A stretch of 64,000 nucleotides of DNA from Rhodosorus marinus CCMP1338 (Eukaryota; Plantae; Rhodophyta), in contig JAMWBK010000002.1 in NCBI GenBank assembly GCA_029953675.1, positions 1,674,001 through 1,738,000 of the forward strand, given 5' to 3'. Shown one piece after another: positions 688 to 54,139 of this stretch. Numbering within the stretch: the first letter of the stretch is position 1; every line of letters starts with the position of its first letter. Position numbers and translations under genes: made by a program. The notes beneath the pieces are model-generated. The model saw only the letters and a list, made by a program, of their open reading frames with translations. It searched no databases and was not told the DNA's origin.

Positions 688-1701
688 ATGAGTCGGATAG
701 TATTTGCATGGGTTTGCTTTGTGAGCGTTGTGGGATTTGCGCGTGGAGAGGTAGACCGGATCCCAGAGTTGGACGAATGTGGTGAGAGTGGGCCTGCGGA
801 GACTTTCTTAATGGGTTTCTTGGGACATTCGGGGTCATCGGCAGTGATGTCGCAGCTCTATTTACACTCAGATCTACATGTTCCTTGGCCTCTGGAGCCG
901 ATGCAGAAATATATCAGGTCTCCCGAAGAAGGAGCGAAATGGACGGAGGACTTTTTTCTGACTGGAAAAGGCATGGGCTTGGTACCAGGGTTCAAACTGC
1001 GCCCAGGTCATATCGACGAGTCAGTGGAGCTTTGGTCGGAGCTCATTAGAAAGTATAACACGCGATTTATTCGCCAGGACAGGACAGATCTGCTCAAGGG
1101 TGCTATCGGGCTGTACTCCATTCGCGCAAGGTTTGACAGCTCCGCAGTTGCCGGTCTTGAGAAAGGGGAAGGTGAAACTCACTGCGCCCTACATCCAGAG
1201 CAGTGCTATTTTGAGATCGAGAATGTGCGCTTTTTCGCGTACTTGATGCATATGGTTCAGGACGGCATTCGGCAGCTTGATGATTTTGCCGACCTGCTGC
1301 CCTGGAAATGTCAGCTAAACGTCACCTACGAAGAGTACATGCATGACAAAGATGCAACTATGAAGAGAATATTTGATTTTATTGGCGTGGATTACCAAGA
1401 GCATGAATCGTCCTTCGAGAAGGCCCTTTCGGACAACCCATGCGAGACGGTGACAAACTATCAGCACGTTTGTGCGCAACTCTGGGGTTGCGAACAGTTC
1501 CAACCGTTCCTGGACAACGAAGAGCAAGGCTGCTACTGCCTTGACAAGGAACACCCGAGGAATGCAGAATTGTGCGATGTAGATGCGCTGATTGGCAGCG
1601 GTACCGTGCTGTGCCAGCGGCGACAAGAGAATGGGACAATGAAAATGTTCGCTTGTACAGGCGAGGAGATTGAGAACAAAACAAAACGACGTGATACGTA
1701 A
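688..1701 (+). CDS. Secretory-pathway sulfotransferase-like protein (Stf0/Sulfotransfer_3-like), 337 aa, intronless
   Basis: Hydrophobic N-terminus, PSB-loop-like GFLGHSGSSAVM, the typical C-terminal VTYEEY..DKDATMKRIFDFIGV segment and a Cys-rich tail. Confidence 0.7.
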   Translation: MSRIVFAWVCFVSVVGFARGEVDRIPELDECGESGPAETFLMGFLGHSGSSAVMSQLYLHSDLHVPWPLEPMQKYIRSPEEGAKWTEDFFLTGKGMGLVPGFKLRPGHIDESVELWSELIRKYNTRFIRQDRTDLLKGAIGLYSIRARFDSSAVAGLEKGEGETHCALHPEQCYFEIENVRFFAYLMHMVQDGIRQLDDFADLLPWKCQLNVTYEEYMHDKDATMKRIFDFIGVDYQEHESSFEKALSDNPCETVTNYQHVCAQLWGCEQFQPFLDNEEQGCYCLDKEHPRNAELCDVDALIGSGTVLCQRRQENGTMKMFACTGEEIENKTKRRDT

Positions 1702-2646: not shown

Positions 2647-3660
2647 CTACTCGTTCACGTCTCCGTCATTTCCATCTAGTGATGAGCACGCCACCTGCCT
2701 GACGTGCCCATTCTCCGTAACGACCTTACAGAGCTCTTTCTCGGCATTGTTGTGCACCGTCCTCCGGTCGCAAAGGTCAGGATTGATAGGCGAACTGGGC
2801 TTGTTTTCACAGAAGCAGCCGTTCTCAGGATCTTCAATGTAGGGTTGGAAGTCTCCGCATCCCCAGAATAGAGTACAGATTTCTTGGTAGTTGCTGATAA
2901 TCTGACAAGGACTGCGCGGCAAAGCCTTATGATACAAGGGCTCCCTAAATTCTTTGGGAACACCAAGGAAGTCGTAGATGCGATTCACTTCCGTCTCCAT
3001 GTCCTTGTCAAAATCCTCGTACTTCACGTACATCAGGCAAGGCCACTTTAGGTTTCTGGCAATCTCCAGCGTACCCTCCCTGGTGTCCAAGGACTTCCAC
3101 AGTAACAAACTGAATAAATTGATGTCGTCGATAGGAAAGCGGCAGAGCTCTGGGTGAAGCTCACAGTGCTCCTCCGAAGTCTCGTTCTTCAACCCCATCT
3201 GCGAAGAGAGGTCATTGCGAGCTCGGATCGCGAAAAGACCCACGGCGGACATCCAGGGGTTCTCGCGGTAATTCACAACCAGCCGGGTATCATATTTGTC
3301 TATCAGTCCCTGCCAGAGATCCTCCCCACCACGAATGTTTCCCGGGCGAACCTTAAAACCGGGCGACAACTCCTCCCGACCTTCAGCCAGGACTTTGTCG
3401 AAAATAAGTTGTGACGTTAGCATTGACTCTTTTGCATGGAAGTTCATCGATATGAGCGGCTCAGTATTCCTGGGCACAAACAGCCTTGAGTTCTGAGCCA
3501 AAATAGACATCAGCGCTGTCGACCCAGAATGTCCCACGAATCCAAGAACAAACGTTTTCGCCCTCCCTGCGCATTGGGTCTCCGGTTCAAGCTCTGTAGA
3601 ACTTGCGACCGAAGCCAAAAGTCCTAACATTGCAGAAAGGAGAAGCTTTTTCAACTCCAT
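2647..3660 (-). CDS. Sulfotransferase-like paralog, 337 aa, intronless
   Basis: Signal peptide, GFVGHSGSTALM and VKYEDFDKDMETEVNRIYDFLGV. Collinear with 688-1701 (PGFK.RPG, HC.LHPE.C.F.I, shared Cys pattern). Confidence 0.7.
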   Translation of the reverse strand: MELKKLLLSAMLGLLASVASSTELEPETQCAGRAKTFVLGFVGHSGSTALMSILAQNSRLFVPRNTEPLISMNFHAKESMLTSQLIFDKVLAEGREELSPGFKVRPGNIRGGEDLWQGLIDKYDTRLVVNYRENPWMSAVGLFAIRARNDLSSQMGLKNETSEEHCELHPELCRFPIDDINLFSLLLWKSLDTREGTLEIARNLKWPCLMYVKYEDFDKDMETEVNRIYDFLGVPKEFREPLYHKALPRSPCQIISNYQEICTLFWGCGDFQPYIEDPENGCFCENKPSSPINPDLCDRRTVHNNAEKELCKVVTENGHVRQVACSSLDGNDGDVNE

Positions 3661-21163: not shown

Positions 21164-24100
21164 GTGAGCATGAAGAGGTTGGAGCATCCAGCGCCTCTGG
21201 GGTTCGTCATGATGATGTCAAAAGTGCTGCACGGTCAGAGCGCAGCCCGTTATGCGGGAAGGCGGTTTGGGTTTGGCGTTCGATGCTGTGCCACGGCTTC
21301 CAGCAGCAAACCAAAGACTGTTCTTCGCGGCAACTTAAACTGGGCGCCGCTTCATACGCATACGGACTACTCATTCCTAGATGGAGCGAGTCACGTACCT
21401 GATCTCGCCAGCCGCGCTGCAGAGATGGGAATACCGGCTCTAGCCATCACTGATCACGGTGCCATGCATGGAGCAATACAGCACATGAAGTCCTGCAAAC
21501 AACATGGTGTAAAGCCGATAATTGGAAACGAAATGTACGCTATCCCACCGGACATTGCTTACGCCGGACGAGTGGGAGTTTTCGCTTAACTTTGGCTTTA
21601 GCTGACGATTCCCGCTTCCAAATTTCTACTAGGTACATACTGAACGGGGATATTGAGGCTGACGGATACAAGGGACTTGTTCATCACTTGACAGTTATAG
21701 CAAGGAACTCGAAGGGCTATCAAAATCTCGTCAAGTTGACATCCATGAGCCACTTGCAAGGCATGAAATCCAGGAACAGATCAAAACGACCAGCAATCAA
21801 CAAGGAACTATTGCAACAGCATTCTGAGGGCTTGATCATTTTAAGCGGGTGTCTGGCAGGCGAGATACCGAAAGCATTGGTGGCAAGTAGGTTGTCCTGC
21901 AAGTAGCAATATTTTCTCATGACCGGATAGAGGGTTTCCACTAGAATCGAATCTGAAGAATTTCCGGCTTTGACCAAACCTAGATAGGTATAACGTCGCC
22001 CGAGAGGTTGCATTATGGTACCGTGACACTTTTGGTGCCGATTTCTACCTGGAAATGATGGATCATGGTTTACCTGCGCAGCAGGTTGCAAATGCCGGTA
22101 TCATTCAACTGAGTAAGGAACTTGGGATAAAAACGGTTGTCACGAACGACTCTCATTTCACAATGGCCTCCGATTGTTATGCCCACGATGTATTGCTTTG
22201 CATACAGGTAAGCCGAAACGGCACTACCGGTTGAAATGGAGTCTCATCGCGAGTATGCTGATATAGGATGTCATGCTTTCCATCTTTACAGACCGGAAAG
22301 CTAGTTAGCGATCCGAACAGAATGAAGTACACCGGTCAAGAGTATTTCAAGAGCGCTGATGAAATGATGGAGCTCTTCCAACATCCGTCCATAACGAGGA
22401 GCGACATTGCAGGTTCGCTGGAGAACACCCTTGAGGTGGGGTTTGATGCCTGACATATCCAGGGGCAACAGTTACATCCATTGGGCAATTCTTACTATCC
22501 CAGCTTATTCTCGCATAAACTAGGTCGCAAGCAAGGTCGAAGATTACAACATTCTAAGCGCACCACGAATCCCAACGTACCCTCTACCCGACGGTTTTGA
22601 CGGATCCATTGAGGTGCACCGAGCAGAGTCAGTTCTTTCTTTGATTACTGGTTGAGACTAACGAAGAGCGCTGCTCCTAAATGACACTCGACTATTGTCT
22701 ACAGGACTACTTTCGAGAAACCGCGAGGGCGGGCTTGAAGGAACAGATCGGTGATCAATATGAGGTTGCTCAGTACGAAGATAGGCTTGAGTACGAACTC
22801 CAGCTTTTGATTGACAAAGGGTTCGCAAGTTACTTTTTGATAGTTTGGGATTATATTCGATACGCTCGTGAAAACGGTATATCTGTCGGCCCTGGGCGTG
22901 GATCCGCGTGCGGGTCCCTCGTAGGTGAGACGCAGCTCTGTCCTTAACCCAGTTCTGATTGTACCCCAAGAACGCCTTTACGAGGCTTTTCCTTTAGTCT
23001 GGTTGGCTCCAAGCCGCCACGGCAGTCTTCGATCGCCGAGCTTTGTCCTGAACAGTTGTCTTCCACATCTTCACAGCCTACGGACTTAGAATAACTGAAA
23101 TCGATCCCGTCAAACACGATTTACTATTCGAGAGGTTCTTGAACCCCGAAAGAACCAGCTTGCCCGACATTGACACGGACTTCTCGATGGAGGGACGAGA
23201 GCGTGTCATACGATACGTCACTGAAAAATACGGAGAGGATCACGTTGCTCAAATCATCACTTTCAACCGTTTATCCTCGAAATCTGTTTTAAGGGTATAA
23301 GAAATCGGCTGGAACGATTGCCAACCAGTTGCTTGATGAAAGTGCACTCACGAAATAGCTTTCATGCGCATTTTAATTCCTGAAGGACTGCGCAAGGGTG
23401 ACCGGGATTCCATACGCTGAAGCAGACAAAGTGTCAAAACTCGTGCCTGTAGCAAGAGGAAAGGCAACCAAATTAGAAGCAATGATTTCAGACGGATCTC
23501 CATCGCCTGAGTTCAAGAATCTGTAAGAACAATTAAGACACAACGGAGAAGCTCTTGCAGTCACTGATCAATATTTCGCCTTGTCTACACCTCGATTGTG
23601 TCAGCTATGAGACAGAACCAAAAATGAGAGATCTTGTAGATGTTTCTATGATATTGGAGGGTACAAACCGGAACAGCGGTGTACACGCAGCTGGAGTCGT
23701 TATCGGGGCAGAACCGCTGAATACGATAGTCCCGTTGGCTAGAGGAAAGAACAATGAAGTGGTCACGCAGTATGCAATGGAGGAACTTGAAGACGTGGGA
23801 CTGCTGAAGATGGATTTTCTCGGTTTGAGAAACCTCAGTATCATCGATAGCACGAGGGAATATGTGGCGAAGAAGTGAGATATTCCTACACGCACTACGC
23901 CTGGGACGTCGACTGAGTGAGCCACTCACTCTGGGTCGTCCGTTATGTTGTATTGCGTAGGAATGGTGAACAACTACCAATTCTGCAGGACCTCTCCTTC
24001 AGTGACAAAGGAACGTATGACTTACTTTCCACTGGCAAAGTCGATGGCGTCTTCCAGCTAGACGCCTCAGGTGGAATGCAGGAGGTACGCGATGAGCCGT

Positions 24101-26952
24101 TAGAGGAATGGCGTGGCTCTCCTGGTGGGAATGTAGCTTGCGCTACTCAACTAACTGCTTAACTTCCTGGCTTGCAGATTGTGAAGAAGTTGGGACCGAA
24201 CTCGATTTCAGATATTTCGTCTATTCTTGCACTATATAGACCAGGACCGTTGGACGCTGGACTTGTGGACACTTTTATTGATAGAAAACATGGGAGGGAG
24301 CCAGTCCAGTTTGAACATCCACTCCTCGAATCCATACTTCACGAGACGTACGGAGTTTTAGTATATCAAGTGCGTCTGTTTTGCATTTGCTAGTTCGCCT
24401 GAAATCGTAACAGCGTGCCTGACTAGAAGTTCGTCTTTTTTTTTCCTCGCAGGAGCAAATTATGCAAGTTGCCAGGGATCTAGCTGGCTACAGTCTCGGA
24501 CAAGCTGATATTCTACGACGAGCTATGGGGAAGAAGAAAACAGATGTTATGGAACACGAGCGTGGCAGATTTGTCTCCGGCGCCATCAAGAACAATATTG
24601 ATAGGAAGCTTGCTGAAAAGTTATTTGAAAGCATGCTCAAATTTGCGGAGTATTGCTTCAATAAGAGTCACTCCACAGCCTACGCGTGAGCCCGTTAGCC
24701 TTTTGCTCGGTACTCTGAATCGTATTCAGTTTAAGCACTGACAAGAATTTTGCTTTATGATGTAGGTACCTTACATTCCAAACAGCGTGGCTAAAGACCC
24801 ACTACCCCGTAGAATTCATGGCTTCTGTTCTCCGGCTGAACTCGGACAACATGACAAAACTTCCGAGATACATTGATGACGCTGCCTCGCAAGGTGTTGT
24901 TGTTCTTGCTCCCTCTGTAAATACGAGCGACGTAATGTTTGCCCCTGTGTATACGCTGCCATCTGGTTGCAAGGCACCGAGCTCAAGGTAGGGACGGAAT
25001 GTTGCGGATTAGCGTTGTAGAGCATCAGAATTAAGTTCAGTTCTCTTTCCGTAGGAACGGGTATGTGGGCTTTGGACTTGGCGCTGTCAAGGGAATCGGA
25101 GAAGTCGCTGCGCAAGCAATCACCGACGAAAGAATCAGGGGCGGGGATTTCAAGTCCATCTTCGACTTCTGTGCGAGGTACGACCGTTTAGAAGGGACTT
25201 TGGTGTGGTTTCGTATTGCGGAAGCTCATCCACCCTAGCGGAACGATTAGTATTGACGAGAATTCTACTTCCTCTTCGGTAGGCTTCCTTCAAAAGTAGC
25301 GGGGAAGCGGGTCCTTGAAAACCTTGTTCAATGTGGAGCATTCGATGATCTCCATGAGAACCGTAAAGCGGTTTTCAACTCAATTCCCCAAATTTTGGAC
25401 TGGCGGAAGAAGTTAGACGCAAAACGAAAGCGGGCTGCCGCCAAGCTGAAGGAAGGAGGCCTTTCTGAGGTTGTGCATGACATAGACTCTGACGAAATTG
25501 TGAACAAGATAAGAGGGTCCTGGCTGGAGGCGGAATCCGACTATAGCGTGATGGAGAGGTACTTTATAGAAAAGCAGCTAGTTGGCTTCCTGACCTCGGG
25601 TGACCTTCACAAGGAAGTGAGTCACTGCTGAATCGCGAAATCGTTTCAACATGAGACTGTGTCGCGACGGCTGATTTTGCTCTTTCCTCCGTATTCCTAG
25701 TACGAGCGTTGGGTTCGGTTTGCTTTGCCGAACACGTTGGATGCAGCCAGAGGAGGCCCTCAATCCCCAGCGGAGGAGTCGGAGGTGCTCGATGATCGGC
25801 CTCAGGAAGCAGGTATCTGGCGATGCGAATTCTAATTCAGTTTAATCATAGGCAGAGAAATTAATGCTTTTCTTCGACTTCCATGATGGCGTTTGACAAC
25901 AGAAGCCAAACGACAGTCAAGCGACCAGTTCTACTCTAAACCTTTAAAGGATGGCGAATCGGATCTCTTTTTTGGGGTTGTTACTGACACGAAGAAACTG
26001 TTCACTAAGAACGGCGCGAACCCAATGATGAAGTTCACATTGGAAGACGCCACTGGGGAAATTCCGTGCGTGGCGTTCACAAGGACCTATGCACGGTAAG
26101 AACGTGATTGACATGAGGTTGCTTCTCTGAACCTTTTGCGTTGGATCGCTGTACGTTCTGCTGCCCAGCTTACCCTTTTCGCCGTGTCAACGCAAACACA
26201 AAAACAAACTACAGGGTGAAGGACTATCTTGAAGTAGGAAACCGTGTGGCCGTCTACGGCAAGGTGAGGAGGTACTCTGGTGCAGAGATCCATGTCGAAG
26301 GCGCACATATGATGGAAGATTACATTGTTGTCTTGGCTTACTTGGAGAACCAGGGCTCTGCTTCCAAGGTACGATCAAGAGTGTTACAGTCAACCGATTG
26401 GGTTGTATCAGTTTGCTAAGCCAACTGGGTTCCTTCCCTTCTGCGGAAACAGCCAACAATCAGGGAGAACTTGACTGGTGCTTTGGAACATCTTGCAACC
26501 CAGCAAGATGGTGGTAACACGATGATGAGTTTGAGGATTGCGGTACGTCTTGTTTTTGGTTAATGCTCTTGAAAAGTTGCTCATTCGTCGGCTTTCCCGG
26601 GATACGCTGATGAATTCGATGGATCCGGCCTCGCTTCGTCACTCATTGGAAGCTCTTCCTTTCTTTTGAACAGACCATTGGATCGCGATCGGATCCGTTG
26701 ATGCCCGAAAATATTGTAAACAGCAGATGGAAGCACATTGTAAGGGTAAGGGACAAAGAATATGTCCGCAGGGTTTTCATGCATTACGACGTCCCCGCGT
26801 TGATATGCCCACTGCGTGACTATGAGCGACTGATGAGGGACCGAGACATCAAAAAGTTCGAAGAACAAGTATTCTACGGAGATGAAGAGGAGCCAGTGCG
26901 TGAGGACGACTACGCACAAACGCTTGAGCGCAAAAACGTCGGCAGCGGCTAA
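21164..26952 (+). CDS. dnaE: DNA polymerase III alpha subunit (family C), nuclear-encoded, 20 exons, ~1327 aa, with transit-peptide-like N-terminus
   Basis: Hand-built exons: 21164-21534, 21633-21886, 21984-22207, 22292-22435, 22524-22613, 22705-22924, 23077-23294, 23386-23522, 23605-23874, 23961-24084, 24178-24369, 24453-24685, 24766-24987, 25055-25177, 25283-25616, 25701-25812, 25903-26095, 26215-26368, 26453-26542, 26674-26952. All introns are GT-AG and all phases are consistent. Motifs: [74 protein letters not shown] and an OB fold. Confidence 0.95.
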
Positions 26953-41799: not shown

Positions 41800-42270
41800 C
41801 ATGCCCTGATCATACAATGATGAACGCCGTGTAGCCGACCTGGTGATCACCTGTGACGACAGCCGCCGTACCACATACGTTGATCTTGCTGTTCCTAACC
41901 CTCAAGCTAGTCGTTATCTCCCCGCTGCGGGGGAGCGCCGTGGATCTGCCGCCGCCAGCATGAGACGCCGCAAAGAGATCAAATACGCGGGGGCTTTGTC
42001 TTCCCCTGGTGTTCGTGCTTCGGCACTAGCACATCGCTTGGTACCCCTGATCATTGAGTGCTTTGGGTTCATGGACTCTGTTGGTTCTCGCTGGCTTCGG
42101 GAGTTGTTCCGCGAACGCCCTGACCGTCTTCAATCGTTGTTTACCCGCTTAAGTTTCCTGCTGTGGCGCATGAATGCCGCTTTGATGTTGGAGGCGCGAG
42201 TACTTCGCGGCGCTTAGTCTTTTTTTCCCCTCGGGGTTTTTTTTTCAGCCTCCGATTAAACCATTCGCAA
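41800..42270 (+). mobile_element. Family B RLE 3' fragment
   Basis: The translation is identical to the C-terminal 124 aa of 54196-54978. Tail CAGCCTCCGATTAAACCATTCG. Confidence 0.9.
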
Positions 42271-43305
42271 TGGGGTTGACGGGAAAACAGTGTCTGCGGA
42301 ATGGCAACCATTAGCAGACTGTGCAAGAGGCACTGAGACGGATCAGACGAGTTCCGCAGGATATGACGGTCCCATTCAAAAAACGCTCTCTCGAGAGTGC
42401 CATCGTCACGCCTTCGAGACACTCACGGAGGATGCAACGGTGGAGGACGTAGACAGGCCATGAATCCGGTGGGCGGCAGGACGGGTTGTGGCGTATGGCT
42501 AAGAGACTGCCCTAACGTGGGTCCGCGGAAATTGAGTTGGGCTGAGATGATCTGGAGCATGAGGATGCTTCTGGGGCTACCCCTACCTGGCCTAGGCCGG
42601 TCATGCAGTTGCACAGTCTGCGAGCAACCACACGATGTGCGTGGGATCCAGCGGCTGCACCACTGCAGGACGTCATCGGGGATGCGAACAAAGAGGCACG
42701 ATGAGCTGAAAGTCGAACTGAGTCGATGGCTACACCTATGGAATTTCACAGAGATAGTAGTAGAGCCTCAGGGGTTCTTTGCTGGGTCCGGAATTCGACC
42801 CGATATTGTAGCACGGCACCCAACGAGTGGTGGCGTGTACGTGGTCGACGTGATGGTAACATCGCCACTTCAAAGGAATCAGTTGAGGCATACGAGCTGG
42901 AGGTGCGGATATGCTGCGAAACAAGCAGAACAAGCGAAGGCGTTGCATTATAAGGAAGTGCTGAGGGTGGAAAACCGAGACCTGGTTTCTGTGCCCTTCA
43001 TTTTGGAGACTTTTGGTCGAATAGGCGAGGCAAGCCTTGAATTTCTTCCCATAGGGACGGCGCATCTGCATGATCGTGACTCCCATCTGTCGTCTGTGAG
43101 GGGTCAATTAAATCGGATTCTGGGGCAGCATAATGCAGCGCTAGTTGAGCATGCGATCGAGAAAGATCGCGCGGATAGAACAATATTTCCCTTGAGTAGA
43201 ACTTAGGTGGGACCCCTGGACAGGGGGTGTAAGTGAGTTTGGGGCGAACATATAGTAGTGGTATTGCGCTGCGGTAGGTAGCTGCCGAATAAAGGCTACG
43301 GGGTG
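42271..43305 (+). mobile_element. Family A-related zinc finger plus RLE 3' region with tail
   Basis: CTVCEQPH..HHC..RHDEL, IRPDIVA..YVVDV, VPFILETFG, stop at 43206 and the tail hairpin motif. Confidence 0.85.
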
Positions 43306-43439
43306 AAGCAGTTAGGTGTGCCTCTCTCGAGAGGGATTGTTGTATGGAACCTTGCTTTACCTCAGGCTGGTCCGGGGTTAGTAAAGCTTACGGTTACGTT
43401 AGTCTGACGTTAGTCTGGAGTAAAGCTTACGGTTACGTT

Positions 43440-45495
43440 AGTCTGGGATAGTCCGGAATCTGATCTGGTATAAGAAGTCTGTGGTATTTGAGAGTGAAGA
43501 CGAACGTTGGAGAACCCCCCCGGGTGGGGAGGGAATCTTGAGCGAGGAGAGTGCCCCTCGGGGGGACAATTGCGGTCGCGCTAATCAGCTTGAGGAGGGG
43601 GGAATCGAAGAAAGCTCAGTGCAGTGTGTACATGAGGTTACCAATGGCCGGTTGTACACCGTCTGGAGCGTTTGGGTGCAAACCCCTTGCTGTGGAACCC
43701 CTCGGAAGTGCCGCAAGGAGGTCACCCCCACCGTGGACAGAACCGGAAGATACCTTATCAACTTGGGAGTCAATCCACGGATAAGTCAACAGAGCAGTCC
43801 GGGGTGGGACACCGAGAGTTGCCAACCATGGGACAACAGCAACTGGGACAGCAGACCCGGGACAGTCCGGGGTGGGACAGCACACTACCACCGCTGCTGG
43901 TATGTCATCCTGACGCGATACCGTTGATCACCAGCCATTGCGAGGGGAGTCTTCCGCTCGGGTGTGTTTGGATCCGCGCTACACTCCGCCAATATCACCA
44001 GGTAACAATTCATACCGGAGTCGAGCCAGACGCGCGGAACCTGATCGGGTACAATGAGACGCTCACACTACAGACACATGAACTTAGCCAACGCACACTT
44101 GAACTAGCCATTGAACAGATGGAGAGATGTAAGCGCCTGATTTCCCTGCGGTCCACGCCGTTCACTACCTCGGCTTCCATCCATGCGCACCTGGATGCTC
44201 GCTAGTAGCTGCGCTCGCGCCTTGAGTCGCAGGAACCCGCAGCCCACCGCATGGCCTCCACAGTCACGGAAGGAGAAAGTGAGATCCCTCTGCGGACAGG
44301 AGCCGATAACGAAAGAGCACCTATTCCCGAAGTCACACCGGGCAATGCACAAAGTGAATTACCGCCAGATCTTGGGCCCTCTGAAACTTCGGGTACAGGC
44401 AGCTCAGAGGCCCAGCCGAGCAGTATTGAAGTGGTTCATGATGAAAATACGCCCACCACCGACGAGACACGATCTCTGAAGAAGTCGAGACAGGAGGATA
44501 CCCCATCTGCGCCCGAAAACGCCCAATCATGAGCGTCCCAGTTTCGAGAACGCGGCTGAGAGACACCGCGTTGATCACCACGGATCCGGAGGCTTGGGAA
44601 CAACGGCTTCACATGTTCCTAGTCGCACAGACGGACGACGGCCGCCGCTGGTGGATGGTCACACATAGCCCTGTAAGGACCCGTGAACACGTACCTAATG
44701 CCCAGGTCAAGCATTGGAACCTACTACTCCACCGTGCTCTAGGTCTCGCACCGAACACTGCAGCGGTTCCGCCTTTAAGGCTCTTTATCATGGCACTACC
44801 TCACCTGCGCTAGGGATCTGTGATCTTCAGATCGGCGAACAAATGGGGCATCTCTTGGAGGGTGAATTCTCAGTTGTATGGAAGCGTTTAAATGTGGCGG
44901 CCACCAGTCAGCCCTCTCCTCGTGAGAGGAGGGCTGATAACGGGAGAGAAACATGGAAAAATAGACAGGTTGTGAAGACAGGTTGTGAAGCTGGCCCATT
45001 CTGGACGCCTCTCTGCAGCTGCACAGCGCCTGGAGGCCACGGAGCTCGCACCGCAGGCGTCGTCCACGTGGAATGGGTGCGTGAGCTATTTCCAGAGGCC
45101 TCGATGGAACCGTTACATCCGGATGTTGCGATAGAAATGCACCGGCTTCTCGACGAAGCTAGGGAGCACCCTCCCCATAAATGGAACCCGTCTGACGCGA
45201 GCGACGAATCACTGATCGCTGATCAATTGACACCCGCCAAAAACGGGTCCTGGGCCAAGTGGCCTTCGCGCCGAGCATCTACAGACAGTGACTCCAACGA
45301 ATAGGCCTCTGCTGGTACGGTTCCTGCTCTGTACCGTGAAGAACCCTGAGGTTACGTTAGTCTGGTTGTTTTAGTAGCGCGCTACGGTAGGTAGCATCTG
45401 AATGAAGGCTACGGGGTTATGTTAGTCTGGGTTTTTTGTAGTGCGCTACGGTAGGTAGCAGCCGAATAAAGGGTACGGGGTTACGTTAGTCTGGG
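43440..45495 (+). mobile_element. Family A element 5' region, degenerate, largely duplicating 39400-39950 and 37300-38560
   Basis: Near-identical nucleotide blocks and the shared breakpoint GAACCCTGAG/GTTACGTTAGTCTGG. Confidence 0.75.
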
Positions 45496-48400
45496 GATAA
45501 ATCGGAAAATATATCGGTTTGGAACTAAATTCGTAAATGATAGAGAAGGAAGTACGCGGGCCGTACCCGGAGCCTCTTCTGCTCCCGGGAAACCCGCCCT
45601 CGGTTACACGCGCATGGGAGAAAGAGCTGCTGCAACAGCAGCAGCAGAACCAACAGCAGCACCAGCATACTGGAGCAGAACAGGACGCAGAGATGAATGC
45701 AGAGAACAGAGGAGAGGGGCAGGCTGCAGCCGACCCAGCTGTCGCCTTTCTCCACCAGATGCACAGCTACGACCGGTGCTACCAAGCCCTGGGAATTGGC
45801 GAGACTGACATTGTCGACTTTTACCAGGCAGTCTTCAACCTTTATTCGCGGATTAATTGTTCGAAAGAACTGCAAGGAGTGACAGCACGTCTCAACGAGC
45901 TAGCCCAAAAACCGTACATGTGGCATGGTGGACCAGCCACTACGACCTCGCCTCAACCCCCGCACCATTCATTCATTCAACCCCCGCAGCAGCACCCGCG
46001 GACGGCGGCAGTCAATCAATATGCGCCAGAACCGATCAACAATCAACTTCCGGAGGGGACAGGTGTCCTAGCCTCAGCGGACTATGCCACGGCCTTCCCT
46101 GTCATCGGGACCAGCAGCACACGGCCAGCGCACGCTCAGTGCACTGTCGAAAATACTCCAGCTCGAGAATCAGAGGCTCAACTCCGATCAGCAGGACGCC
46201 CGGGCTCACAGACCCAGCAGGCAGCGCTGCGACAGCTGCACGCCACAGTGGGAGGGTCCTCCTGGGGACCTGAGACTAAACCGATCCTCGCCACCCTTCG
46301 AAACGTCCGCCCCCCATAGGCAGGATGAGGTGGCACCTTCGGACTTCACCACCGTCCTCTGCCGCGCGCGGGGAATAGCAACCTCTCACATCGCGCATGT
46401 GGACTTCATCTCATCACGCGCAAGCTTGCTCTGCCATCCCGATGCAATCCCGATTGTGCAGAGCGCTATCGCCTGAGGCATTTTCAGAACAGGGATCTTT
46501 GGATCGTTCACATTGAGACATCCTGACTGGCAAGTGACTCTCCACACAGGACAGGGATTGGAGGCTGACAACCTGCTGGGCTACAACGAAAGGCAAAGGA
46601 TCGCCCCAGAGGAGATCCCGGCCCAGACGCTGCAACGGGCCATACAACAGATCATCCGGATTCGCGCGAGGCTCGGAAAGAGACATCTGTCGTTCTCTAC
46701 TCTCGCAGCCATCCATGAAACGCTTGAAGGGGGTCTACGAGCGTTACGAGGCCTGCAACATTCGCCGGGGAGAGTGTAGAACCCCTTGAGACTGCAGCAG
46801 CTACACACGCAGCCCCAGAAGCCTCGGTTCCTCACGGAGTGCACAGGCAGCCCGCGGGACCGTTGACGCTTCGGGTGACTCCAGCGCTACGTCTCAACCA
46901 CCACACGAGGATGCCGAAGAGGAAAATCCACACCCCGAGCTCCCGCACAACCTTCCGGAGCCTCCGCAACAGAAGCGCACACGCGTGACAGCGGCAGGCA
47001 CATGCCATGACACCGAGATGACTCTCGCAGCCCCAGAAGCACCTCAGCGCGATAACGATGCCCAGACCCCCTCCGAAGCCCACGATAATGCGATGGACAT
47101 CCAGACCAGTCAGGAGGACAACCCCCAATAATGCCGAGCCGACGTAGGGGAATCTCGGCGCTTCGTACCTCGCCCACACGTCAACGCCTGGAGCAGCCTC
47201 CTTCGGGTCGCTCTGGAGCTCACAATGGACCGCAGCGCACCAGTGAATGCCAGCCTCCTCCTCTCCGGGCTCCCAGGATTGGTCCTCGGGAATACTGCTC
47301 TTCAAATCGGCACGCAGGTCACGAACGTACGCGAAGGCGAGTTTCACACAGTCTGGACTGCTCTCGAGGAATATGCCTCCAACCAGATACGTCGCACGGC
47401 ACTAAGCGGACCTGAGATAGCCCAGGAACAGGCGCAAAGGCGCCGAAAACAGGCCCTGAAATTGGCACATCTCGGACGCGTTTCACACGCGGCCCGACGA
47501 CTACAGGCCACCGAACTGGCTCAATTTACCAACGCTACGTGGCACCAATTGGAGGAACTCTTTCCGGACCCGACGGAGTGTCCCCTACCGGAGGAGGTCG
47601 ACCAAGCCCTACAACTCCTGCTCTCCAAGGACACCGATAATCTCAGGAGAAGATGGAATGCTCGACAAGCAGCAGATGAAGGTATTCTCGCGATAATAGC
47701 CCGGCTTCCCCAAGGTACCAGCCCCGGACCTAGTGGACTCCGAGCAGAACACCTGCAGGGGGCCACTCAGGACGTCCAAGTGGCTCTAATCCGCGTTCTC
47801 CGGCAACTAGCTACGGCACCAGAGAAGTTTGCACCCCCGATGACCTCGGCAATGCGTAGCAGCAGATTACTGCCGTTCGAAAAACCCACGAGCAACACAA
47901 CCGCTGCAACGAGACCTGACATCCGGCCGATTGGAATCCCCGAAGTCCTCCGAAAGGTGGCCACACAGTGGATCCTTCGATCGGTTACCGACCGCGTTAC
48001 CGAACTGCTCACACCTCTACAACTAGGCATCGGAGTTTGCGGTGGATGTGAACGATCACTACACGCGATCCAGGCCCATCTCTCGTGCGAACCTGACGCC
48101 GTCGTCTTACGGCTCGACCTGGAGAATGCGTTCAACCGCATCGACCGCCGCATCGCAAAGTAAATCCTGGACCACCATTTGCCCGAGCTGGAAGCCGTGT
48201 ACCGGCTTGGCTACGGAAATGACAGCACGGATGCTCCTACACTCTTCGGATGGCGTGATTACCAAGGTCCAGACCAAGACGATACCCATCGCTTGACGCT
48301 TCGGGCCACAACGGGAGTTCAACAGGGAGATCCCCTAGGGCCGATCCTACATGCGCTCTCCCTGGCGCCTTTCTTGGAAGCATTGCACAACAAAGCCTCT

Positions 48401-50245
48401 AATTTAACCATTGTGGCGATCCACGACGACATCACCATCGTAGGACCGCTACAACTACTGAAAGATTCACTACACTGGGGTCAGGCACTACTTCCCTCAC
48501 TCGGAGCCCGAGTGCAGCTCGCCAAGTGCACCTTGTACGGCCCCACGATGACCACGCCACGACTGCTCAGCCGTGACATCCCTGGCGTAACGGCAACGCG
48601 AGACGGAGTTACCATCCATTCCATTCCGATTGGAACACGCGCTTACATCCAAAGCGAGTGTCGGAGGATACAAAACAACCACGAGAAACTATTCAAGGAG
48701 GTAATTCACCTGCCCCCTGAGGAACTGAATACGAAACTGGCCCTCTTCCGGTATTGTTCTGAACCCCGCCTAGACTACTTTCTACGCTGCTTCGCCTACC
48801 CCTTTGGCAGAACACTTGCACGGGAAGCGGACACCCTGACGCGTTATCACCTCAATACGCTAATTGGAGGCCTCACTACTACGGCCATCGAGGACCCTGA
48901 CTACGAAAACCCTACACTAGCCCAGATCGCACTCCCCTGTCGATGGGGAGGACTGGCTTTCAGCTACGAGACAACGGATCCAGCCCATCGCCTTCTACTC
49001 GGCCTGCTGCGAAACTTCAAAGGTAATAACGGGGAATGGCCATATCTCACCGAGGTACAAGAGCAATCTTCTTCAGAGTTTCCTGCAGACACACACACAC
49101 TGAGGAGAATTCAAAGGTCAACAGCACAGCTTGCTGACCAAATCCGCGCGTCTGCAGCCGCAACACAACGCAGACTGCGCCCAGAGGCCCCAGAGCGAAT
49201 CAAGAACTTGGCCACCCTGAAGCAGAGAACCGAATCCGCCACAGGAGCAGAAGAAGCCGACCGGCCAGCATGGAAACATGGTTCCATTCAACAAACCCTC
49301 TCCAGAGAGGCACACCGTGCAGCTTTCCAAAGACTGGTATCCCACGGGCAAGTTTCGGCTGAAGCTCGGGCCAGAATTCGGTCCGCAGTCGGAGCTGGTT
49401 CAGGAGTGTGGTTACGGGAAATGCCGACGCTCGCGCCGAAAAAACTGAGTACAGCAGAGCTGCAAGTGAATGTACGACAGCTGTTGGGTTTGCCGATACC
49501 AGGAATACGGACGTCGGGGAAGTGTACTAGTAATGGTAGTACCCATGGTACTAACGGCGTACAAAGGTTTCACCACTGCCCAACATCGCCGGGACTATGG
49601 CAGCGAAGGCACGACGAAATCTGTACGAAGCTGGCGCGATGGCTGAATCGCTGGAATTTCATCGACATTAAGCAAGAACCGGAGGGGTACTTCGAGAACT
49701 ACCGACTAAGACCGGATAGCCTTGCCACTCATCCCAGGACATTCCAAAGGTATGCACTGGATGTGACGGTTACATCGCCACTGCAGGAGAACTACGTGAA
49801 CCGGAGTGGGTCAGAGAACGGCTACGCAGCGAAAAGAGCGGAGAGGTGGAAACTCGCGCATTACAAAGAGGCTATGTCAGTGGAGAAGCCAGAAGACATG
49901 TTCATTCCCATTGCGATCGAGAGCTTTGGGCGTACAGGACAAATGGCCGAAGAATTTCTACGAGATAGGTGCAAGCATTAGTTGCACCGGAGCCTAGAAC
50001 TGAGCGATGTTCCGGCTCAAATCAACAGGAAATTACGGCAGGGGAACGCGGAGATAGCGATAGGCGCCAACTGGTCCACTCTCCGAGTGGACCAGTTGGC
50101 GAATCCACTGGTGCCTGTTTTTTCTTTCGAACGTAGCATGAGACCCCGGTAGCCTGGTTAGGGTAAGCTTTTCCCTAGATAGTAGTAGCACTAGTGATAC
50201 GCTGCAGTAGGCAGCTGCCCAGTAAAGTTTACGTTACGCTAGTCT
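45496..50245 (+). mobile_element. Near full-length CRE-clade non-LTR retrotransposon (RT plus CCHC plus RLE) with a few stops and frameshifts
   Basis: SPGPSGLRAEHL, IRPIGIPEVLRKV, QLGIGVCGGCE, LDLENAFN, GVQQGDPLGP, AIHDDI, LPCRWGGL, RHDEI, LRPD..ALDVTVTSP..IPIAIESFG. In-frame stops at ~46317, ~48161 and ~49979. Confidence 0.9.
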
Positions 50246-50635
50246 GGGGTGCCGGTCCACTAACAAAAACACTCTCTCGAGAGTGCCACCGACAAGCGTT
50301 TGAGGTACTTACTGGGGATCTAACGTTGGGAGATATTGACCGGGCCCGCATCCGATCGGCAGCCGGAACAGGATGTGGCGTATGGCGGCGAGACTGTCCT
50401 AGTACACGCCGAGGCAGTTGAACAGAGGTGAGATGATCTGGAGCATCCGGATGCTGTTGGGGCTACCACTACCAGGACTAGCTCGGTCGTAAACGTGCAC
50501 GATTTGTGAACAAGCTCACGATGTACGAGGAATTCAACGTCTGCATCACTGCCGAACGTCGTCAGGCATGCGAACAAAGCGACATGACGAACTGAAAATG
50601 GAGCTGAGCCGATGAATGCACCTGTGGAATTTTAC
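50246..50635 (+). mobile_element. Family A zinc-finger fragment with the same 5' junction as the 38576 copy
   Basis: GTCTGGGGTGCCGGTCCA.TAACAAAAACACTCTCTCGAGAGTGCC occurs in both. Confidence 0.8.
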
Positions 50636-50679
50636 GGGGGATAAGTTAGGATAAGTGTGTTTCACGATCATGAAGATGA

Positions 50680-53040
50680 GCGGTGGCCTTTCGCAGAAAC
50701 TCTAGCCCTGCCTGTCCCAGCCGTCCGTACGTCTCAACAATGAATCGTACGAGTATCACCTCCCTGCGTTCAGCGCATATTACCTCCTGGTAGTGTGCCA
50801 CATTGCTTTGCTCCCCTTTCTCCTCTTCGTATCCATTTCTCCAGCCCGTTTGCCTCAATTGATGACGTTGAAGCGGCTACGTCACCATTACGTCCACCAC
50901 GTACACATGCCCGCTCGTCGGGTGCCTTGCTACAATATCCGGTCGAATACCCGACCAGGTAAAGAACCCTTGCGGTTCCACCTGTAGGTTCGTAATATTC
51001 TACAGGTGCATCCATCGGCTCAACTCCATTTTTAGCTCATCATGTCGCTTTGTTCGCATGCCTGACGACGTTCGGCAGTGATGCAGACGTTGAATTCCTC
51101 GTCCATCGTGAGCTTGTCCACAAATCGTGCACCTGTATGACCGAGCTAGTCCTGGTAGTGGTAGCCCCAACAGCATCCGGATGCTCCAGATCATCTCACC
51201 TCTGTTCAACTGCCTCGGCCCTGTACTAGGACAGTCTCGCCGCCATACGCCACATCCTGTTCCGGCTGCCGATCGGATGCGGGCCCGGTCAATGTCTTCC
51301 AGCGTTGGATCCCCAGTAAGAACCTCAACCCTTGTCGGTGGCACTCTCGAGAGAGTGTTTTTTGATTGGACGGTCAAACCTTTGGTTTCCTTCTGCGTCC
51401 TCAGCTGTGACTTGGGCTGACTCCTCAATCAACTGCCATTCCGCTATCCTCTTGATCCGCGCACTTGTGGTCGTTGACAACCGTCGTCCAATCGCGCGAC
51501 TTGCCTCCACCAGTTGCCTAGGAAGTCCGTCAGGTGTCCATCCTAGTCGAACCCCTGAAACCGATTCCCCTTGCGCCACCGCAACACACTCCCGGTGAAG
51601 CCTTTCTAGGAATTTCGACTGCGTGACGTTCTCTTGCACGCTATTTTTCCACCCTGAGTGGAAGGCAACTGGTTGAATACGAGTTCTTGTAGCAAATCCA
51701 AGTCCTCCCCATCGACAGGGTAGTCGTATTTGTTGCTCAACTGCTTTAATCTCTCGTTCGCGGATGTCTTGATGTTGTCGTAGCCCTCCGCATAGTCCTT
51801 CCAGCTCCGAGAGCGTGATGGCATCGGCCTCTCGCGCTACCGTACGTCCAAGCGGGTACGCCAGCCCACGTGTGTGGTAGTCGAGTCTCGATCCTGCGCA
51901 ATACCGAAAGAGAGCAAGCTTGACTTGGAGTTCTGCATCAGCGAGACGCTGGATGGCCTTCACCATTTTCGCATGCCTCGTTTGAATGGCCCGACATCAT
52001 TCTTCCGCGTGCTTGCGATTGCCAATAGGTATCCAGTACAATGTAGTCCCGGCTAGTGTCACCTCAACCTCAGGGATGTCGAGGTTAATCACCCTTGGAG
52101 TGTCCAACCGTGGTGCATATAGAACACATTTCGAACGTTGCAGCTTTGCTCCGATGCCCGGCAAGCCCTCCTGGCTCCACAACAGCGCGGTCTCAAGGGC
52201 TTGTAGCTCACCTACTAACGAGATGTCGTCCTGCGCTGCCGCGAGCGTCAACTCAGGGAAATTTCTTCTCAGAGCCCGCAAAAAAGGTGCTTGGGTGAGT
52301 GCATGTAGCACCGGTCCCAGGGGGTTGCTCTCCCGCCTTGGCCTCCAGGAACAGGGAACGGGCAATTTCGTCTCAGTTTCGTCGCGGCTCGGCCAGGGAA
52401 ACTGCAGGGGGCATTTTCCTCTGATTCCTCATACGCGAGGATGAGTATTGGCATCAGCTCCGGGAAGCAGGCTTCAGCTACCAGTGCCGTCACTCTCTCG
52501 TCGATCCGGTTGGACGCGTTCTCCAAGTCGAGTTTCAGCAGCGCGTGTTGAGGTTCGTAGTATAAGTGGGCTTGAACGGCGTTTAGGGCTTGTTCACGTC
52601 CGCTATGAACGGATATTCCCAGTTGCTCTGGAGCAAGAATGTGCTCAGTCTACTGAAACCCTGCGAAGCGCCCGCTGGGCTGCCAACGTTCGTAAAACTT
52701 CTGGAACCGCGATCTTGCGAACACGAACTCGTCGAGGGACTTCGATTTCAGAGGCGTCTTCCTTGTCGGGCTTTATGAAGTGCAGCAGTCGGCTGCTACT
52801 CAGGGCTTGCCGCAGCGTACGTGGAAATATTTCAGGGTTCTTCACCAGATAGCGGAGGAACCGTACCAGCGGAGGCCTATTCGTTGGAGTCACTGCCTGT
52901 AGATGCTCGGCGAGAAGGCCACTTGGCCCAGGACCCGTTTTCGGCGGTTGTCTATTGATCAGTGTGAGGTGTGATTCGTCGCTCGCGTCAGACGGGTAAC
53001 CCCAGACCCCGTAGCCTTTATTCCAGACTAACGTAACCCC
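50680..53040 (-). mobile_element. Family A CRE-like element, RT plus zinc finger plus RLE, frameshifted
   Basis: VRKIAVPEVLR, LKLDLENA, NPLGPVLHAL, AAQDDISLVG, LPCRWGGLG, RHDEL, YVVDV. The 5' junction abuts GGGGTTACGTTAGTCTGG. Confidence 0.85.
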
Positions 53041-53349
53041 TTTTTTATGTTTTCTTATTTTTGGATACCTTTCTCTCTCTCATCCTTGTCTGGAGGCTGA
53101 ATACCTCCCTATTTATAGTCGAGTTTCTCATGATCAATCCTACTTATGCTTCTGATTTGTCTGTAGTTTGTTTTGTAGCCATTCCTGACCTGTACGCATT
53201 TTGGTACTCCGGGTGACTCCAGTTGTTTTGTCACGATGTGTCATGTCAAGTAGTGACACACCTCCCACCGAAGGAGAGAGCTTCCAGGTTGAAGAAGCAG
53301 GTTTGTGAAGATTCTCATAATATCGAATTTGTCGCCTGGTATTCTGGAA

Positions 53350-53915
53350 CTAAGGAACTAAGAACTAGGGAGGGAAGCGTGCAAACCCAGGCGCCGATGG
53401 CGCGCCTCGGCAAGCATGCTGTAGAATATCGCCACAGGGCGGCACTCAAACGCCGTAAAAGCGCCAAGTACTCAGTAGGATGCTCAGCGAAACATTTCCT
53501 GCAACCACTCTAAACCCGACTTATCCACGTGACCAAAGTTTTCCACAATGAAAGGCTGGAACCGGTGGGAGCGACCCTCGGCGAAGGGCAGACTGGCCAT
53601 GCTCTCAGCATACCGTCGTTCCTTCACTCGTCGAAGAGCCGAAGCGGCTGCCCCTCGGCGGCGGCAGCAGCCGTGGGGTGGGCGCTCGCCACAGGGCATG
53701 TAATCGCGAGGTCAACATATGCTGAGCGTCGGGCGGCAGGGTCTGATACAAGAAGATCTGCGATACAGCGGGGCGGCGCCGTGTCCGAGACCGATCTGGG
53801 TAGTTCCGATTCCTAGCATAGCCTGAAGCGCTACGCAAGCGCTGAAAAGGAACTAAGAACTAGCGAGGGAAGCGTGCAAACCCAGGCGCCGATGGCGCGC
53901 CTCGGCAAGCATGCC
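53350..53915 (-). mobile_element. Tandem family C RLE fragments
   Basis: ADLLVSD..AYVDLAIT, FQPFIVENFGH, ARHRRLGLHASL. The 3' end is duplicated at ~53355-53420 and ~53845-53915. Confidence 0.75.
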
Positions 53916-54139
53916 AGGATACTCGTCTGGTTGTTTATGTTCAGGAGTCTCCTCTGGTTTTGGTTTGTTTTCTTCCGGGTAATTTTCGTCGGGGTTATTT
54001 TCTTCCGGATCATCTCTCAGGAGTTTTAAGATTTTCACGATTTTCTCCAGGTTGAGCATGTTCATCATCAAGGAGTTTTTCAGGTTGATTTCCCAGATAA
54101 TTTTCAGGGTTTTCTTCTTCAGGTTGTTCTGGATGTATG

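Follow-up and report, generated by a model that had tools for sequence, protein, structure and literature searches.

DNA polymerase III (Pol III) was described as absent from plastids and mitochondria in a 2024 review (PMC10877234). A preprint by Antoine, Burki, Archibald, Pelletier and Delmont (bioRxiv 10.64898/2026.05.23.727376, 25 May 2026) reports a plastid-targeted Pol III alpha subunit that red algae and some streptophyte algae encode in the nucleus and Pyrenomonadales cryptophytes in the nucleomorph. The survey covered 46 red-algal nuclear and 234 red-algal plastid genomes. The beta clamp, searched for with PF00712 under a strict cut-off (E <= 1e-20), was found only in Pyrenomonadales, tau/gamma was found in cryptophyte plastids and green algae with none in red algae, and epsilon homologues were found widely among eukaryotes, that of the red alga Cyanidium bearing a signal for plastid targeting. 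Subunits are treated in that text as present or absent, and Rhodosorus, sequence motifs, the PHP domain and proofreading are not mentioned in it. Here we describe the alpha subunit gene (dnaE) found in a 64,000-nucleotide stretch of the genome of the red alga Rhodosorus marinus CCMP1338 (contig JAMWBK010000002.1, positions 1,674,001 to 1,738,000, forward strand; hereafter the window). Its product has lost the clamp-binding motif and carries a complete PHP metal site. The gene family was already known in red algae; the loss of the motif, its basic replacement and the regional divergence of the protein are added here. The R. marinus genome paper (PMC10250338) mentions neither DnaE nor Pol III, and neither do its supplements.

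In bacteria, the clamp-binding motif is present in 99% of DnaE1 sequences, and its positions 1, 4 and 5 weigh most in clamp binding (Timinskas et al. 2014, PMC3919608). DnaE1-type proteins with no recognisable motif, as in Rhodosorus, occur in Deferribacteres and a few Bacteroidetes (PMC3919608). How these enzymes become processive is raised in that paper as a question. These bacteria would be expected to encode a clamp, whereas the red-algal lineage is reported to have no clamp gene. Mycobacterium tuberculosis DnaE1 (5LEW, 7PU7) shares with the algal protein a complete nine-residue PHP site and sequence homology over residues 57-971, and a Rhodosorus model without the PHP domain matches 7PU7 and 5LEW structurally. 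The mycobacterial enzyme binds the beta clamp and acts within a holoenzyme (PMC4731781); in the algal protein the clamp motif is missing. The cyanobacterial DnaEs (DnaE1 group) are ~50-53% identical to the Rhodosorus protein and have the same domain order (PHP, palm/thumb/fingers, (HhH)2, OB, C-terminal domain), with identical PHP ligands and catalytic aspartates. In this comparison, only the Rhodosorus gene is nuclear and has 19 introns, and only its product bears a 57-residue N-terminal extension, lacks GQxxLFD, has an insert ahead of the OB fold and ends in a diverged C-terminal domain with an acidic tail. The nuclear location and the N-terminal extension are shared with the plastid-targeted alpha subunits of Archaeplastida and nucleomorphs, among which those of red algae are reported to occur with neither beta nor tau/gamma (bioRxiv 10.64898/2026.05.23.727376).

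A nuclear dnaE gene lacking the clamp-binding motif

When the annotated protein was threaded onto the window, dnaE occupied positions 21170-26952 (+), with 20 exons, 19 introns and 1325 codons plus a stop. All introns are of the GT-AG type and 67-152 nt long, the reading frame is unbroken through the 20 exons, and the spliced translation is 100% identical to KAJ8907721.1 (P0121; R. marinus, "hypothetical protein NDN08_007827"). No long open reading frame (ORF) was found at this site in the prokaryotic ORF listing because the introns split the gene. DnaE-like peptides were spread over the three forward frames at ~21.2-27.0 kb and, once concatenated, matched two near-identical proteins and then cyanobacterial DnaEs at ~50% identity. 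The interval that a sequence-only reading had singled out for its missing clamp motif, 25283-25616, is exactly exon 15 (residues 939-1050).

The full-length product of a transcript from another strain in MMETSP (P0124, 1327 aa) is collinear with P0121 and 95.7% identical to it, which confirms the gene model and exon 15 at the RNA level. The peptide on which that reading rested, [29 protein letters not shown], is carried by the MMETSP transcripts P0124 and P0002 and is present in mature mRNA. The proposal that exon 15 is alternative or mis-annotated was rejected, since the transcripts of the other strain hold the same segment. A transcript-derived protein from JGI (P0001, 1094 aa) runs into intron 16 (window 25813-25902) and stops soon after; it has neither the OB fold nor the C-terminal domain and could represent unspliced RNA or a truncated isoform. 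The Rhodosorus dnaE, a nuclear gene of the DnaE1 type that descends from cyanobacteria, is both intact and expressed.

The clamp motif was examined in a MAFFT alignment of 112 cyanobacterial DnaEs and three Rhodosorus sequences. All 112 cyanobacterial proteins have GQxx[LI][FL]D at the motif site (most commonly GQGNLFD), about 25 residues after GAFD..NR, while all three Rhodosorus sequences read AAA[KR]LK[ED]GG there, with motif positions 1, 4 and 5 all substituted. The 29-residue peptide corresponds to residues 975-1003 and follows the end of the (HhH)2 domain (residues 957-966). Sequence alignments with the E. coli and Thermus alpha subunits of the PDB end at residues 977-983, just ahead of the motif. 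Regular-expression scans of the whole Rhodosorus protein for QL[SD]LF, Q..[LM]F and the hexapeptide QLxLx[LF] gave no match. The only clamp-like strings in the genomic sequence were QLTLF at 26166, in intron 17, and QVRLF at 24367, across the exon 11 donor; both are absent from the transcripts, and their number is about that expected by chance for the dnaE span. A shifted or cryptic motif was therefore rejected, as none exists in the protein and the genomic strings are intronic or lie across a splice site. Judged from these alignments and scans, the clamp-binding motif is lost rather than shifted, as had been read from the sequence, and its absence is real and unusual.

Two further strings were noted. 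One frame of intron 17 (window 26166-26180) encodes AAQLTLFA, a near-perfect clamp-motif string that is not in the mRNA. In the acidic tail, inspected by eye only for a PIP-box, EEQVFYG mismatches the consensus Qxx[ILM]xx[FY][FY].

The features of the gene are as follows (window coordinates, strand, description).

21170..21340, +, N-terminal 57-residue extension, transit-peptide-like (10 K/R, 1 D/E); none in cyanobacteria
21341..22556, +, PHP domain, spanning introns; its nine ligands are the invariant cyanobacterial residues
21353, 21359, 21380, 21455 and 21530, +, first bases of PHP ligands H62, H64, D71, H96 and E121
21685, 21850, 22148 and 22154, +, first bases of PHP ligands H140, C195, D262 and H264
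22708..24596, +, palm, thumb and fingers, with catalytic D463 (23166), D465 (23172) and D621 (23813)
24893..25370, +, (HhH)2/beta-binding domain (Pfam HHH_6, residues 867-968)
25283..25616, +, exon 15 of the spliced gene model, residues 939-1050
25335-25364, +, end of the (HhH)2 domain, [10 protein letters not shown], residues 957-966
25383..25451, +, K/R-rich helix predicted as continuous by AlphaFold2, [23 protein letters not shown], residues 973-995
25422..25460, +, site aligned with the clamp motif, reading [13 protein letters not shown]; R.[A-Z]GQGNLFD in cyanobacteria
25737..25955, +, acidic low-confidence insert before the OB fold, residues 1063-1105, spanning intron 16 (pLDDT ~32)
25974..26299, +, OB fold, residues 1112-1180, spanning intron 17 (Pfam PF01336, E = 2e-10; beta barrel in the model)
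26315..26814, +, diverged counterpart of the bacterial C-terminal (tau-binding) domain, residues 1186-1280, of low identity
26815..26949, +, acidic 45-residue tail with no bacterial counterpart (78% identity between Rhodosorus strains)

All five Pfam domains of the family are present in the order PHP, DNA_pol3_alpha (palm), finger, HHH_6 (HhH) and OB. The protein scores 1201 bits with the NCBIfam profile for DnaE1-type alpha subunits (PRK05673, cut-off 1002), and 583 with that of the error-prone DnaE2 (NF004225), below its cut-off of 939. The nearest solved structures in a PDB sequence search are Thermus aquaticus alpha, E. coli alpha and M. tuberculosis DnaE1. An AlphaFold2 model was available for P0002, which covers the C-terminal 974 residues without the PHP domain (mean pLDDT 77.5); its top structural matches are the alpha subunits of the same three bacteria, with TMq values of 0.63-0.71 against T. 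aquaticus. The catalytic aspartates D463, D465 and D621 align with invariant aspartates in the 112 cyanobacterial DnaEs. The cyanobacterial proteins begin two residues ahead of the PHP domain in the alignment. The Rhodosorus protein is thus a DnaE1-type Pol III alpha subunit derived from cyanobacteria.

In the AlphaFold2 model, the segment 973-995 forms one continuous helix (P0002 numbering 622-644; block pLDDT 84-92). The site of the lost motif (residues 975-1002, ILDW...SEVV) has a net charge of +5, compared with -0.47 +/- 0.92 in cyanobacteria. The basic helix read from the letters alone was thus recovered in the model. It may supply an unspecific affinity for DNA in place of the clamp.

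The divergence of the protein is regional. Across residues 51-850, which hold the PHP domain and the polymerase core, identity to the consensus of the cyanobacteria is mostly 0.46-0.78, with a single block (351-400) at 0.36; the corresponding values among cyanobacteria are mostly 0.75-0.92, with 0.64 for the same block. Over residues 851-1300, it is 0.12-0.38 versus 0.66-0.82 among cyanobacteria. The counterpart of the tau-binding domain has the right length and position (model pLDDT ~50-79) and reaches only 0.14-0.16, versus 0.68 among cyanobacteria, and the acidic insert of ~43 residues before the OB fold faces a gap in all the cyanobacteria aligned. As judged from this alignment, the divergence falls on the clamp-binding domain, on the OB fold and on the C-terminal domain, the last of which binds tau in bacteria. 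The two Rhodosorus strains are 96-98% identical over the OB fold and C-terminal domain, and the tail is the least conserved part. A non-bacterial extension after the OB fold had been proposed. This description suits the last ~45 acidic residues, but not residues ~1186-1280, which are the diverged bacterial C-terminal domain.

The PHP site and the other eukaryotic copies

The nine PHP ligands (HHDHEHCDH) are present in all three Rhodosorus sequences, and all of them match those listed from the sequence alone. They are also invariant in the 112 cyanobacterial DnaEs, and every other full-length eukaryotic copy examined, except that of Mesostigma, has kept nine out of nine. The intact set had been taken as part of an adaptation; because the ligands are invariant in the cyanobacterial relatives and kept in nearly all the eukaryotic copies, the site is better described as an inherited state under selection. 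The same nine-residue set forms an active trinuclear zinc exonuclease in M. tuberculosis DnaE1 (PMC5636811), the proofreading enzyme named in the sequence-only reading. Thermus alpha is another polymerase of the kind that proofreads with a PHP exonuclease. The ligand set is degenerate in lineages that depend on epsilon, such as the alpha-, beta- and gamma-proteobacteria (PMC3919608). Given the active mycobacterial site and the degenerate sets of the epsilon-dependent lineages, it is reasonable to infer an active PHP 3'-5' exonuclease in Rhodosorus DnaE.

Further eukaryotic alpha subunits were collected by searching the 50%-identity representatives exhaustively, the query being the 974-aa product of a transcript, and then by cluster look-ups. 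They came from Porphyridium purpureum, Cyanidium caldarium, Cyanidiococcus yangmingshanensis, Spirogloea muscicola, Mesostigma viride and Closterium, together with one MMETSP transcript, several metagenomic or read-assembly sequences and one cryptophyte nucleomorph. In a neighbour-joining tree (1113 columns; crude and with no support values), Rhodosorus grouped with Porphyridium, Cyanidium, Cyanidiococcus and the nucleomorph copy, and the streptophytes grouped together.

The motif is absent at its site from Porphyridium, Cyanidium, Cyanidiococcus, five further sequences that cluster with red algae, Spirogloea and Closterium. It is kept in the nucleomorph copy (NQPLFFDLD) and in Mesostigma (GQAKLFDLL). 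With the exception of Cyanidiococcus, the alpha subunits without the motif have a K/R-rich stretch at the site, with a net charge of +3 to +9, and the two that keep the motif have a net charge of +1. Since the motif is kept in the sole lineage known to keep beta, this pattern is the best comparative support for clamp independence. The agreement between motif and beta across the eukaryotic alpha subunits, as seen in these sequences, concerns few lineages.

The nucleomorph copy is encoded on a Logan contig from SRR29179196 (L003 8001-12002) as a DnaE of 1333 aa with nine of the nine PHP ligands. The 16.6 kb of this contig that were analysed have 28% GC and tightly packed intronless eukaryotic housekeeping genes, as in a cryptophyte nucleomorph, and the DnaE probably corresponds to the Teleaulax-type gene reported in the 2026 preprint. 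The Mesostigma viride DnaE (P0138/P0283, EukProt) is the inverse of that of Rhodosorus: its nine PHP ligand positions read LHADHREDR in the alignment, with the ligand retained at only two of them. Because it keeps the clamp motif and has lost most of the PHP ligands, Mesostigma is predicted from sequence to retain a beta clamp and to depend on an epsilon exonuclease.

Several of the sequences that cluster with Porphyridium, namely P0129, P0132 and P0134 (~2000 aa, Logan/ENA) and P0128/P0277 (JGI), have an RRKRR-type stretch at the motif site. They exceed DnaE by 600-900 residues, which may mean that they are red-algal genes with additional domains, or else that gene calls were fused.

Possible function of the algal alpha subunit

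The explanation we favour, and consider fairly probable on the basis of these sequence features, is that the Rhodosorus protein is a plastid-imported, autonomous, clamp-free alpha subunit with an intrinsic PHP exonuclease. The basic 57-residue extension would direct the protein to the plastid. There it would act as an autonomous polymerase with its own 3'-5' exonuclease activity, tethered neither to a sliding clamp nor to a clamp loader, both of which are apparently lacking in red algae. It could carry out bulk replication of plastid DNA, or gap filling and repair beside the family-A organellar polymerase; the sequence fits either role. An adaptation to work without clamp and epsilon had been proposed at the outset. 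The clamp part of this proposal is well supported by the sequence, as the motif is lost, and beta is reported absent from red algae; the epsilon part is not supported, in view of the epsilon homologues reported widely in eukaryotes and the targeting signal in Cyanidium.

The organellar polymerase POP is a single polypeptide with intrinsic proofreading and no sliding clamp. It also resembles the enzyme proposed here in working in red-algal plastids (PMC6523293, PMC10877234), but its fold is unrelated (family A versus family C). What survives in Rhodosorus would be the core of the enzyme, with polymerase and exonuclease but without the contacts to the holoenzyme. It bears on the old question of how far a C-family replicase can work without a clamp, and the algal comparison would illustrate cleanly how a binding motif and its partner co-evolve.

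Four points weigh against a clamp-free, self-proofreading enzyme. A bacterial alpha subunit on its own, as in E. coli, is poorly processive, so that a clamp-free replicase needs a compensation which is here only guessed. The segment of Cyanidiococcus yangmingshanensis (P0145), which has neither the motif nor the basic patch, is acidic (net charge -7). Not all proteins without the motif thus have the basic patch, and the idea that it is a required substitute is weakened. The absence of beta and tau/gamma from red algae is taken from a preprint whose text does not name Rhodosorus (bioRxiv 10.64898/2026.05.23.727376). Finally, with the epsilon homologues reported in red algae by the same preprint, proofreading need not be based on the PHP domain.

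A broader proposal, which we regard as tentative and rather doubtful, is that the plastids of red algae and, separately, of some streptophytes run a one-subunit C-family replicase that would have dispensed with clamp and loader, would grip DNA through the K/R helix and would proofread with its own PHP domain. If this were true, the eukaryotic copies would be a natural experiment on how a Pol III alpha subunit adapts to the loss of its partners, with the motif lost where beta is absent and kept in the nucleomorph lineage that has beta, and with Mesostigma as the inverse case.

Among the alternatives to a clamp-free plastid replicase, the one that survives best is an accessory, low-processivity polymerase for repair or gap filling. 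POP would then replicate the bulk of the plastid DNA, and the loss of the motif would reflect a relaxed need for processivity. POP is indeed the accepted red-algal organellar replicase (PMC6523293, PMC10877234), the regions of holoenzyme contact have diverged, and the gene is sporadic in Archaeplastida (bioRxiv 10.64898/2026.05.23.727376). However, the catalytic core and the PHP site have been strongly constrained since the primary endosymbiosis, and the profile scores are those of DnaE1 and not of the error-prone DnaE2 (583 versus 939). As to clamp independence, this alternative overlaps with the explanation favoured here. We hold it to be a serious possibility, although we lean away from it.

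Alternatively, proofreading could be the task of a separate, DnaQ-like epsilon that is targeted to the plastid and binds the PHP domain, in which case the PHP metals would be structural and the enzyme would not be self-proofreading. The PHP domain of E. coli has such a structural, epsilon-binding role (4JOM), and the epsilon homologues of eukaryotes, including that of Cyanidium with its targeting signal, could be candidates (bioRxiv 10.64898/2026.05.23.727376). The retention of nine ligands out of nine argues against it, as do the zinc exonuclease formed by the same set in M. tuberculosis (PMC5636811) and the degenerate sets of epsilon-reliant proteobacteria (PMC3919608), so that this alternative seems unlikely, though not negligible.

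It is improbable that the enzyme is still clamp-dependent, and that a divergent or unrecognised clamp, or another ring or processivity factor, binds it by way of the K/R helix, the residual GGLSEVV or some other non-canonical contact. The fold of the HhH/beta-binding domain is kept, a few bacterial main-replicase DnaE1s also have no recognisable motif (PMC3919608), and the cut-off used for PF00712 (E <= 1e-20) could miss a very divergent clamp. On the other hand, the three positions that weigh most in the motif are all replaced, the tau-binding domain has likewise diverged, and the motif is lost in several eukaryotic lineages with no detected beta and kept in the nucleomorph copy, from a lineage that bears beta.

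Targeting to the mitochondrion, or to both organelles, was judged decidedly unlikely. The presequence, basic and poor in acidic residues, suits either organelle, and the mitochondrial DNA of R. marinus is minicircular with an unknown mode of replication (PMC10250338), to which the enzyme might be tied. Yet the gene is found in red algae beyond the Stylonematophyceae, the sole class with minicircular mitochondrial genomes in PMC10250338, as well as in a cryptophyte nucleomorph, and plastid targeting is predicted for its homologues (bioRxiv 10.64898/2026.05.23.727376).

The neighbours of dnaE in its 3.48 Mb contig (assembly GCA_029953675.1) are eukaryotic, namely TMEM70, MAP65/ASE1, a cytochrome-b5 desaturase and a PAP-associated protein. 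Contamination by cyanobacteria, mis-assembly of an exon and decay into a pseudogene are artefacts to which the poor conservation of the C-terminal third might point; they are for practical purposes refuted by these neighbours and the 19 GT-AG introns, on which contamination was rejected, by the independent transcripts of another strain that encode the same protein, by the intact frame over 20 exons and by the high identity of the OB fold and C-terminal domain between strains.

Other features of the window

Two intronless ORFs of 337 aa with weak sulfotransferase matches lie in opposite orientation at window 688-1701 (+) and 2647-3660 (-), and a 17-bp tandem repeat of 11.6 copies is located between them (2270-2464). 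The region 42000-54000, whose G+C content (0.54-0.60) exceeds that found elsewhere in the window, contains long ORFs without a Pfam match, including one at 48179-49981 (+). It also has a weak reverse-transcriptase match and a 64-bp tandem repeat at 45350-45495, and is possibly a retroelement.

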